Assembly (NCBI GenBank): GCA_964035545.1
Contig: OZ037768.1
Span: 22,291,319 to 22,355,318 of the forward strand
Reading direction: 5' to 3'
DNA from: Bugula neritina
Lineage: Eukaryota; Animalia; Bryozoa
DNA length: 64,000 bases
Shown piece after piece: positions 51,522 to 55,300 of the stretch (its first letter is position 1; every line of letters starts with the position of its first letter). The notes beneath the pieces were generated by a model. The model had not been told where the DNA came from. It saw only the letters and a program-made list of their open reading frames with translations, and made no database searches. The position numbers were made by a program, and so were the translations under genes.

Positions 51522-52397
51522 ATCCGATCAGCTGGATTACCAGTGTGTAGAAAGCATGTCGAAACATCAAGAGGCTACAACATTGAGTTAACTCTGTCTC
51601 TATCAATTAACAGACTGAACTGTCAGCAATAATTTTTTGTTAGTTTGAACATCTACTGTTTATTATTCATAGAACTATTTGCTGACAAGAGTGTTAGCTG
51701 CTGGCCTATAGTGACAGTGTATTGGGGAGAGAAACTGTAAGGAGAGGTCTGAGATCACCACTTTTAATCTGGAACTTTGTGGCATTACCTGGTGTTACTC
51801 AGTGCTAATTGTTTTCATTACATAATTTGTATGTAAATACATTCCAGTTTGGATCTTTCCCTATTAGCAAATAAATTATTATGAAATTATCAAACAATTG
51901 TTATTACACAATGACATGGTATGCAACAATACAAAGTGTGTTGAGACTTAGTTTAGATGAGCAGTCAGCTGTTGAACAGCTTATAAGTTATATTTACTAC
52001 TCTGTGAGCTGATATTCCTTATTGATAATTAATTCCTTCCCTGGGAGCTGTTTCAGTGAGAAGTTGAAAAGTTTACAAGATCTGTTGAGAGAGAGAAGGT
52101 CCACTTCCAGTTGCTTGTATGTTGAATAAATTTAAACAGTAATTGTCAATTTGTTAGTAGCAGGCTATCCTATCTAATTTTGTATCTAGATTAATCGTGG
52201 TTAACATTTTATATTTCTGGTTTTGCTAATCCTAAACTGTCTAGAAACTTTTCTGTTTTCTAACTATCTATTTCATTCATCATTAGCTTTATTAAATTCC
52301 TCCTTTAAAAGCATTATCTTGGCCAAAGCATTGTAGATTTTGGGTGGTGATAGTACATTTTGACTACTTTTCACTGCTAGCTCTTGTTTTTAGGAGG

Positions 52398-55300
52398 ATG
52401 AATTGCACCTGGTTAACCATATTCTTAGTGTTAGCTTTATCTAGCTACACACTTGCAGTGTGGTATATTTAAGAGTGTTGCCATTAGCAAATCTTACGGA
52501 TTCATATGGGCGCCATTATGCCGAGATTGGTACCGCGAGTTTATATAAGTTATAAAGGAAAAATTTTGCCACTTTTGTTATTTTATTTTTTTTCTATTTT
52601 ATGTGTACATTTTTTTTAATTTTTTTTATTGGTAAAGGTTTTAAACACATTTTTAATGCACATAAAATTAAAAGAAAAATTAAAACTCAATCATGCACAT
52701 AAATACAAAGCTATAAAGTTAAAGCTTCGCTGTGATTTTAATGTGAATATGGATTGAATAATGCTTGCAATAATCATTATACACAAAATACGTTACAGTT
52801 GCTATAAATGTAAGACTAGTTAATTGGATGCAAATAGGCACGGTAATACTACTTAATTTATGCTATTTTTGAATTTTGTAGTAAATATTTGGCATGTATA
52901 TATATATATATATATATATATATATATATATATATATATATATATATATATATATATATATATATATATATATATATATATATATATATATATATATATA
53001 TATATATATATATATATATATATATATATATATATATATATATATATATATATATTATTATATATATATATAATATATAATATTATTATATGTATATATA
53101 TATATTATATATAATATCATTATATATATATAATGTATATAATTTAATATATAATATAATAATATATTATATATGATATTATTATATATATAATATAATA
53201 TATAATATAATAATATATTATATATATTATATATGATATTATTATATATATAATATATATATAATATAATATATAATATAATATTATAATATATATATAT
53301 ATATATATTATATATGATATTATTATATATATATAATATATAATATATTAATGTATAATATATTATTATAATATATATATATATATATCATATATAATAT
53401 AATATATAATATAATAATATATTATATATGATATTATATATATATAATATAATATATAATATAATAATATATAATATATTATTAAAATATATATATATAT
53501 ATTATTATAATATATATATATATTATATATAATATTATTATACTTGTATAATATATATATATATAATATAATATAATATATAATATATAATAATATATAA
53601 TATATTATTATAATATATATATATATATATATTATAAATAATATAATATAATAATATATTTCATATGATATTATATATATATAATATATATATAATATAA
53701 TATATAATATAATAATATATAATATATTATTATAATATATATATATATTATATATAATATTATTATACTTGTATAATATATATATAATAATATAATATAT
53801 AATATATAATAATATATAATATATTATTATAATATATATATATATTATATATAATATTATTATACTTGTATAATATATATATAATAATATAATATATAAT
53901 ATATAATAATATATAATATATTATTATAATATATATATATATATATTTTGTAAATAATATAATATAATAATATATTTTATATGATATTATATATATATAA
54001 TATATATATAATATAATATATAATATAATAATATATTATATTATTATATTATATAATATATTATTATAATATATATATATTATATATAATATTATTATAC
54101 TTATATAATATATATATAATATAACAATTATAACATAAAAATATATAATATATTATTATAATATATATATAGATATGTATATATATATATATATATATAT
54201 ATATATATATATATATATATATATATATATATATATATAATACATGCCGAATATTTACTACAAATTTCAAAAATAGCATAAATTAAATAGTATTACCGTG
54301 CCTATTTGCATCCAATTTACTAGTCTTACATTTATAGCAACTGTAACGTATTTTGTGTAAAATGGTTATTGCAAGCATTATTCAATTCATATTCACATTG
54401 TAATCACAGCGAAGCTTAAACTTTATAGCTTTGTATTTACGTGCATGATTAAGTTTTAATTTTTTTTAAAATTTTATATGTATTGAAAATATGTTTAAAA
54501 ACTTTACCAATAAACAAAACTAAAAAAAATGGACACATAATATAAAAAAAAAATAAAATCACAAAAGTGGCAAAATTTTTCCTTTATAACTTATATAAAC
54601 TTGCGGTACCATTAGCGACATAATGATTTTTCATGGTTTAAAGTCAACACTCTTAATATACCACACTGCACACTTGGTAAGTATATATACTTCAGGTATT
54701 TCCATAGATAGATAAATCATATCATCACACAGCTGCCATGACACTGATGTGTGTCAATCCAAATTGAATTTCAAAACTCTAATCTGTAGACCCTATACCA
54801 AGCTGACTTTGAAATATGTCCTTGCTTTGCATTTTGTAATTTTTATCAAGTCAAAACATTTCGGTAATGGTAAATACTTTTTGTTGTGTAGCCAGATATA
54901 TTTGAAAAGTACGTATATAAAGTGTAACTGAACATATTTGGCTAAAAGCAATTCATTTATATGCGCTGTAGTACTCTTTCTTCTACTACTATTTTGTTCA
55001 ATTTGTTATCCCATGCTGTATTAAACTAAATGTATTTTCAAAGCAAACATGGTAAATATCTTTGCATGATAGGTAACGCCCCCAAAGTGATATTATAAAT
55101 ATACTTTTGTATATTGCCTCAAGAGTGTTAGGCTATTGAATTGAGCATCTTTAACTTGCACTGCATGCAGAGCTATCCAACTTAATTTTCATTACCAAAT
55201 TTCCTTTTTGTTTTGCAATAAAGTGAAATGTATAAATGTGCACTGTGCATGTGCACTGTGTGAGTTGATCAGACAGTATCACTACATAAAATTACAGCCT

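Follow-up and report, generated by a model that had tools for sequence, protein, structure and literature searches.

A young transposon inserted into a signal-peptide-like exon has probably disabled one haplotype's copy of an immunoglobulin-like gene in the bryozoan Bugula neritina

The stretch of DNA considered here, referred to as the window, comprises 64,000 nucleotides of the Bugula neritina genome (GenBank assembly GCA_964035545.1, contig OZ037768.1, positions 22,291,319 to 22,355,318 of the forward strand). It contains a gene with a predicted immunoglobulin (Ig)-like domain, the first exon of which appears to encode a signal peptide and carries a transposable element close to its 3' end. 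The features of this locus, in window coordinates, are the following.

52394–52455, plus strand: exon 1, with a YAG acceptor at 52392–52393, a 4-nt leader, an ATG at 52398 and 58 nt of coding sequence ending in phase 1.
52448–52455, no strand: left copy of the target-site duplication CACACTTG; homologous empty sites have one copy only.
52456–54668, no strand: non-autonomous DNA transposon, most likely hAT-like and foldback-shaped, with an 8-bp duplication and CAGTG termini.
52456–52896, plus strand: left arm of the element, a long inverted repeat with at least 40 other genomic copies at 98–99% identity.
52470–52472, plus strand: TAA stop met on read-through from exon 1 into the element, from reading the frame.
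52897–54239, no strand: (TA)n-rich, A/T-only core, whose length differs among copies (copies of 1520–2696 bp).
54240–54668, minus strand: right arm of the element, a long inverted repeat identified by its alignment to the left arm.
54669–54676, no strand: right copy of the target-site duplication CACACTTG, located by script.
54677–55443, plus strand: intron 1, from the orphaned donor GTAAGT (54677–54682) to the AG at 55442–55443, colinear with a paralog and with a homologous contig described below.
55444–55860, plus strand: exon 2 (417 nt, phase 1 to 1), encoding a predicted Ig V-like domain in which four cysteines are conserved.
56349–56436, plus strand: putative exon 3, a Ser/Thr-rich stalk and a short hydrophobic tail, followed by a GTAATG donor, or by TAA at 56437–56439 if unspliced.

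The element is 2,213 bp long and lies between two copies of CACACTTG, which are perfect both by direct reading and by script. Its ends are inverted copies of each other, CAGTGTGGTATA(T)TTAAGAGTGTTG, with 24 of 25 positions matching and one indel. They belong to long inverted arms of 441 nt (left) and 429 nt (right), in which a script found 392 of the 445 aligned columns to be identical; a repeat search of the window reported an inverted pair of 386 nt at 92%, and the overall arm identity is 88–92%. The core between the arms is a degenerate (TA)n array. When the element and one copy of the duplication are deleted in silico, the sequence reads tttttag/GAGG ATG...CACACTTG/GTAAGT (slashes mark exon boundaries): the 8-mer constitutes the last 8 nt of the 58-nt coding exon, and its right copy directly abuts GTAAGT. 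At an unoccupied window site we would expect ...CTACACACTTG joined straight to GTAAGTATAT.... The chance of finding an 8/8 duplication that exactly abuts both termini is ~1.5e-5. The original prediction, made from the letters of the window, was that a transposon had entered the last 8 nt of a signal-peptide exon, had duplicated its target site and had cut the exon off from its splice donor. All three points agree with what we found: the two 8/8 copies abut the termini and homologous loci are empty at the exact point, the exon is conserved in eleven homologous copies, and GTAAGT is now 2.2 kb away, at 54677.

The conservation of exon 1 emerged from a genome search with positions 52380–52455, which found the same exon at 93% identity in the neighbouring paralog and at 87% in C9 genes; a search that started from the contig L030, described below, added further copies. 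Eleven homologous copies retain the YAG acceptor 4 nt before the ATG, the 58-nt coding part and the GT donor in phase 1, with the exon ending in ...ACAC(T/A)T(G)G before that donor. Every one of the exon 1 homologues sits 0.2–1 kb upstream of an Ig-like exon, and their peptides are hydrophobic, following the pattern M-x-C/F-T/P-W-L/I-T...SYTL. By eye, the window peptide consists of an n region (MNC), a hydrophobic h region and a c region (SYTLA) followed by QPS; T and A stand at -3 and -1 before QPST, a pattern present in the 11 homologs. Judged from this conservation, exon 1 is a real exon encoding a signal-peptide-like segment. The acceptor before the ATG was also considered as a possible trans-splice site; this idea was set aside, as a Ciona-type spliced-leader pattern had 0 matches in the genome.

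Homologous loci show the same gene without the element. The paralog (L028; C4:22270000–22279999, minus strand) is a segmental duplicate, ~85% identical to the window gene with introns included, and it is colinear with 51593–52455 and then directly with 54666 onward. Two Logan contigs of a separate data set, L030 (SRR4020084) and L031 (SRR4020083), are 81–84% identical to the window over both flanking stretches and read ...CTAGCTACACACTTGGTAAGTA..., with one copy of the 8-mer; a third Logan contig, L032 (SRR4020082), covers 55188 onward only. The best genome match of L030 is the window gene (80–84%), and the next is the C4 paralog (76–82%). Because even the best match reaches only 80–84%, we regard L030 as the homologous locus of another lineage and not as an allele.

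These alignments also mark the edge of the duplicated gene unit. Similarity of the window to the paralog and to L030 begins at one shared base, 51592/51593, which is the upstream edge of that unit; upstream of it, L030 is colinear with the paralog and not with the window.

The element belongs to a large family. A first look yielded 464 candidates for the left arm, of which at least 40, besides the window copy, are 98–99% identical to it, and the 25-nt terminus occurs at least 125 times in the genome compared with 0 times in the control. Twenty copies were fetched, and the 12 that had both ends in range were examined for duplications; all 12 carry perfect 8-bp duplications, which comprise only eleven distinct sequences because two copies share both duplication and flank. 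The copies differ in length because their core varies. Going by the near-identity of the arms between copies, the family is young, which agrees with the earlier proposal that the insertion is recent, and it is probably still active in the bryozoan genome.

Both ends of the element read CAGTG, which fits YARNG, the terminal motif of hAT transposons. Together with the 8-bp duplication, these ends point to a non-autonomous hAT-like element as the most likely class. The element was initially described as a foldback transposon. This description holds for its shape, with long inverted arms, and fails as a class in view of the 8-bp duplication, the CAGTG ends and the arms, in which a tandem-repeat search (TRF) found no repeats; because the arms are unique sequence, the term refers to shape only. 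An autonomous partner was looked for in two ways and was not found. First, the hAT dimerisation domain (PF05699) has 14 matches in the genome, and the four of these loci that were fetched are without the element's termini. Second, three intervals of 5–9 kb between inverted termini, considered as a possible autonomous partner, contain long terminal repeat (LTR) retrotransposons and no transposase. We rejected these intervals as partners: each is a copy of the family whose right arm has been invaded by LTR-retrotransposon sequence (L057:433–4954, L058:500–7802 and L059:402–7841, with gag, protease, reverse transcriptase, RNase H and integrase). A palindrome at 51121–51175, which lies between 8-bp repeats GTGCTTGC, was likewise considered as a remnant of the family and set aside, as its termini (CACTGAACAG...) and duplication differ.

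The interrupted gene can be followed through three exons, which were searched and folded singly and joined by script only, for frame counting. From the ATG at 52398 to 52455 there are 58 nt, which leaves exon 1 in phase 1; joining it to exon 2 (55444, after AG) gives G+CA, an Ala codon, and then QPSTK, and exon 2 runs for 417 nt, to 55860/GTAAAC. Exon 2 encodes 138 residues and keeps all 24 positions that are invariant among 12 family members, including C26, C54, C88 and C116. C26 (FTC) and C116 (FYC) fit the (F/I)xC...YxC pair, and C54 and C88 make up a second invariant pair. An AlphaFold2 model built on the family alignment has 8 strands, with a mean local confidence score (pLDDT) of 82.6 and a predicted TM-score (pTM) of 0.82. 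When this model was compared with the PDB by Foldseek, all 50 of the 50 matches listed were V domains of antibodies (nanobody, Fab) or T-cell receptors, with a probability of 1.00 and E-values from 3.4e-4. On the other side of the balance, the TM-scores of these matches are just 0.41–0.51, and in Pfam exon 2 matched Ig_2 at 14.5 bits (E = 0.043), under the cut-off of 27. We therefore assign exon 2 to V-like Ig domains with moderate confidence; the idea that the downstream exon is Ig-like came with the original prediction, and the predicted V-like fold and its matches among PDB V domains uphold it despite the sub-threshold Pfam score.

Putative exon 3 encodes a Ser/Thr-rich stalk and a 10-residue hydrophobic tail, which may be read either as a transmembrane segment or as a lipid-anchor signal. 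At the end of the exon stands TGG, with TAA next to it, and this point also reads as a GTAATG donor. A continuation of the gene past this exon was sought by listing phase-2 acceptors and by a tblastn comparison with the C9 paralogs, and nothing convincing was found. Identity to the paralog is 94.7% over 56359–56491. The stretch of 55 nt that comes after the TGG/TAA of exon 3 (56437–56491) is ~95–100% conserved among the window, the paralog, L030 and L031, and the surrounding introns far less so; this stretch could be a 3' untranslated region or a splicing element. L030 and L031, which are otherwise near-identical, differ at L030:2700–2720, where ATATAT is inserted in frame in the part of exon 3 that encodes the hydrophobic tail.

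The gene is one of many. Clusters on C9, at ~0.01–0.18, 0.7–1.09, 3.13–3.25 and 4.14–4.17 Mb (loci L015–L022, L025–L029 and L060–L064), contain at least 20 homologous V-like Ig exons, several of them with their own signal exon, and some members stand in tandem ~1 kb apart and are interrupted by stops and frameshifts (L020, L022). When 1.84 billion representative proteins were searched with a profile, only 31 relatives came up, and from this small number we conclude that the family is lineage-restricted. Taken together, the comparisons describe a lineage-restricted birth-and-death family.

The insertion was also followed in reads. Three sequencing runs (X1, X2 and X3) were compared, as Logan contigs, with positions 54241–57300, from the right arm of the element onward. 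In X1, a contig of depth 40 matches 54641–55118 with 0 differences and extends from 28 nt inside the element across the right junction into ~450 nt of flank. Other reference-identical contigs in this run have a depth of 44–45, and contigs with 2–4% differences have a depth of 87–175; at 55994–56129, where two forms sum to 131, the reference-type form accounts for ~44 and the other for ~87. The element-carrying haplotype is real and is the minority in the X1 sample, at roughly one third. X2 and X3 contain only repeat fragments at the locus. A joint from 54526 to 56841 in the reads, with a 21-nt side and extra letters between, was treated as repeat noise.

The summed depth of ~130 suggests that X1 is the HiFi run of the published B. 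neritina assembly, which is 216.00 Mb long in 9 pseudomolecules, with a scaffold N50 of 24.8 Mb, and was built at 132-fold HiFi coverage from a "modular colony" (PMC11480708). High heterozygosity has been reported for the species (PMC7576161). Over 54641–57300 the depths of the two haplotypes stand at 1:2 rather than 1:1, which is odd for a single diploid genotype and may mean that several genotypes were present in the sampled colony. Over 55448–55750 and 54751–54954, X1 has reference-type contigs only (depth ~40–45), and the flanks also carry contigs that are 2–4% different. The two stretches correspond to the exon 2 core and to the first 300 nt of intron 1, where alleles may be hypervariable or may differ in structure.

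We consider it probable, at about 75%, that a young transposon insertion disabled this haplotype's copy of a lineage-restricted Ig-like gene. On the assembled haplotype, a young non-autonomous cut-and-paste element, most likely mobilised by a hAT-type transposase, has entered exon 1 within its final 8 nt. The product of the disrupted gene is predicted to begin with a signal peptide, followed by a single Ig V-like domain, a stalk and a hydrophobic tail. The ATG and the signal-peptide codons now stand on one side of the element, and the duplicated 8 nt with GTAAGT 2.2 kb off on the other. A transcript entering the element should be translated through five codons (A-V-W-Y-I) and then meet the TAA at 52470–52472, a stop that was predicted earlier and found again by reading and by script. 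The GTs in the open frame, at 52412, 52428, 52430, 52458, 52460 and 52463, are in phase 2, 0, 2, 0, 2 and 2, with phase 1 absent, and every possible donor before the stop would be out of phase for exon 2. The predicted outcome is the loss of a secreted or membrane protein from this haplotype, and the insertion would be polymorphic.

Several observations weigh against this conclusion, beginning with the empty sites, which were found only in the paralog and in the ~80%-identical locus of another sample, and none in the same species. Read support is incomplete in that it covers the right junction only, and there the contig has 28 letters on the element side compared with the 31 required for bridging. 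X1 has no non-reference contig at 54751–54954 or in the exon 2 core, although such a hole proves nothing. No RNA run with the locus is among the three runs, and none of them is on record as RNA. The relatives that were inspected from the protein search are all exon-sized open reading frames of genomic contigs, with no spliced product among them. The remaining points concern the state of the gene itself and the ways in which its transcript could be spliced, and each of them opens onto a different explanation.

One such explanation is that the insertion was neutral: the gene would already have been dispensable, or a pseudogene, in a birth-and-death family, and the element would mark its decay and not a knockout. 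In the adjacent sister paralog, exon 2 is frameshifted by a 1-nt insertion in a T run after residue 31 (L028:7440–7870; C4:22277425–22277862, minus strand), so this paralog is likely to be a pseudogene, provided that the additional T is not a homopolymer error, and by extension the window gene may have been dispensable anyway. Tandem members on C9 contain stops (L022), the ratio of nonsynonymous to synonymous substitution rates (dN/dS) in exon 2 is 0.4–0.7, no spliced transcript of any family member turned up in the protein collections searched, and no convincing 3' end of the gene was found. However, the window gene has an exon 2 with an uninterrupted frame of 139 codons and all invariant residues in place, including the four cysteines, exons 1 and 3 are intact save for the insertion, and a dN/dS of 0.4–0.7 is still below 1. 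We consider a neutral insertion unlikely, if the most serious of the competing explanations.

Another explanation is a hypomorphic rather than a null allele, in which most of the element would be spliced out as an intron to give a product with the signal peptide and 21 additional residues. Ds elements in maize genes are known to be spliced out as introns. The original prediction held that the GTs at 52458, 52460 and 52463, in phase 0, 2 and 2, could not restore the frame, and for direct joining to exon 2 this is correct. For two-step joining it is not: in-silico enumeration found exactly one in-frame, stop-free route from a donor after the signal peptide, which runs from the donor at 52458 to an acceptor at 54616 (AG at 54615), through a 61-nt mini-exon (54616–54676) and on to the original donor at 54677, adding 21 residues. 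Yet the donor, GCA/GTGTGG, is weak by eye, the acceptor is weak and its upstream tract is pyrimidine-poor, and efficient use of a 61-nt exon is unlikely within an element that can form a hairpin. Because both of its splice sites look weak, we assign this route a low probability, clearly below that of a neutral insertion. An assembly artefact, for example through a chimeric read or a wrong join within a repeat, is hardly credible: the element is a high-copy repeat and only one of its junctions was checked in reads, with a 28-nt overlap on the element side, but a perfect 8-bp duplication is typical of transposition and not of mis-joins, and the independent k-mer assembly of X1 yields a zero-difference contig from the element end into 450 nt of unique flank.

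By analogy with Hydractinia Alr, the Ig-like genes could conceivably form a highly polymorphic family for self/non-self or immune recognition in a colonial animal, a speculation to which we give little credence. It is hinted at by an exon 2 core that diverges more than the introns between paralogs, by one or more non-reference haplotypes in the reads that fall below 95% identity precisely where the exon 2 core and the beginning of intron 1 lie, with flanks differing by only 2–4%, and by haplotype depths of ~1:2 and not 1:1. Such a family would extend over ~20 or more exons on C9 and the C4 pair. If this were true, the population would maintain several very divergent haplotypes, the one with the transposon among them.

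About 1.4 kb separates exon 1 from the end of the neighbouring gene upstream (48136–50940). This gene is TRIM-like: it has a RING finger (PF13445, PF13639) and cysteine motifs that resemble a B-box, one of its exons is coiled-coil-like, and its last exon resembles a beta-propeller.

The insertion is an event of a well-known kind, ordinary and not new biology. Gene disruption by a hAT-like insertion is textbook biology, and for this reason the case does not change general understanding. What it offers is a base-exact natural example of a DNA transposon severing a coding exon from its splice donor. It should be useful for repeat annotation and can alert users of a reference assembly to haplotype-specific gene loss, and it marks out an unannotated, apparently lineage-restricted family of V-like Ig genes.

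The predicted gene layout resembles that of Hydractinia Alr and of the tunicate V-type Ig receptors, with a phase-1 signal exon, a phase 1-1 V-like exon, a stalk and a hydrophobic tail, and like those receptors it belongs to clustered, fast-evolving multigene families with pseudogenes. On the other hand, the window family has no detectable sequence relationship to them, and its V-like domain, in contrast to theirs, is 138 aa long, has a second conserved cysteine pair and is without the canonical C-strand Trp position.

The element, for its part, resembles the foldback (FB) elements of Drosophila in consisting almost entirely of long inverted arms around a short or simple core and in its ability to fold on itself. 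However, FB arms consist of tandem sub-repeats and FB insertions make 9-bp duplications, whereas the Bugula element has arms of unique sequence and a duplication of strictly 8 bp. Compared with hAT elements, the arms are unusually long (~435 nt, where hAT terminal repeats typically measure 5–27 bp), the core consists purely of (TA)n-rich sequence, the weak nTnnnnAn target preference is not visible in the 13 duplications, and none of the four hAT transposase-domain loci fetched carries these ends. Nevertheless, non-autonomous hAT elements, such as Ds-like elements and hAT miniature inverted-repeat transposable elements, share with it the 8-bp duplication (13 of 13 copies), CAGTG ends that fit YARNG, the absence of coding capacity, a high-copy family of near-identical members and insertion into an exon. 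Ds elements themselves insert into exons and can be partially spliced out, and it is to the non-autonomous hAT-like elements that the Bugula element most likely belongs.

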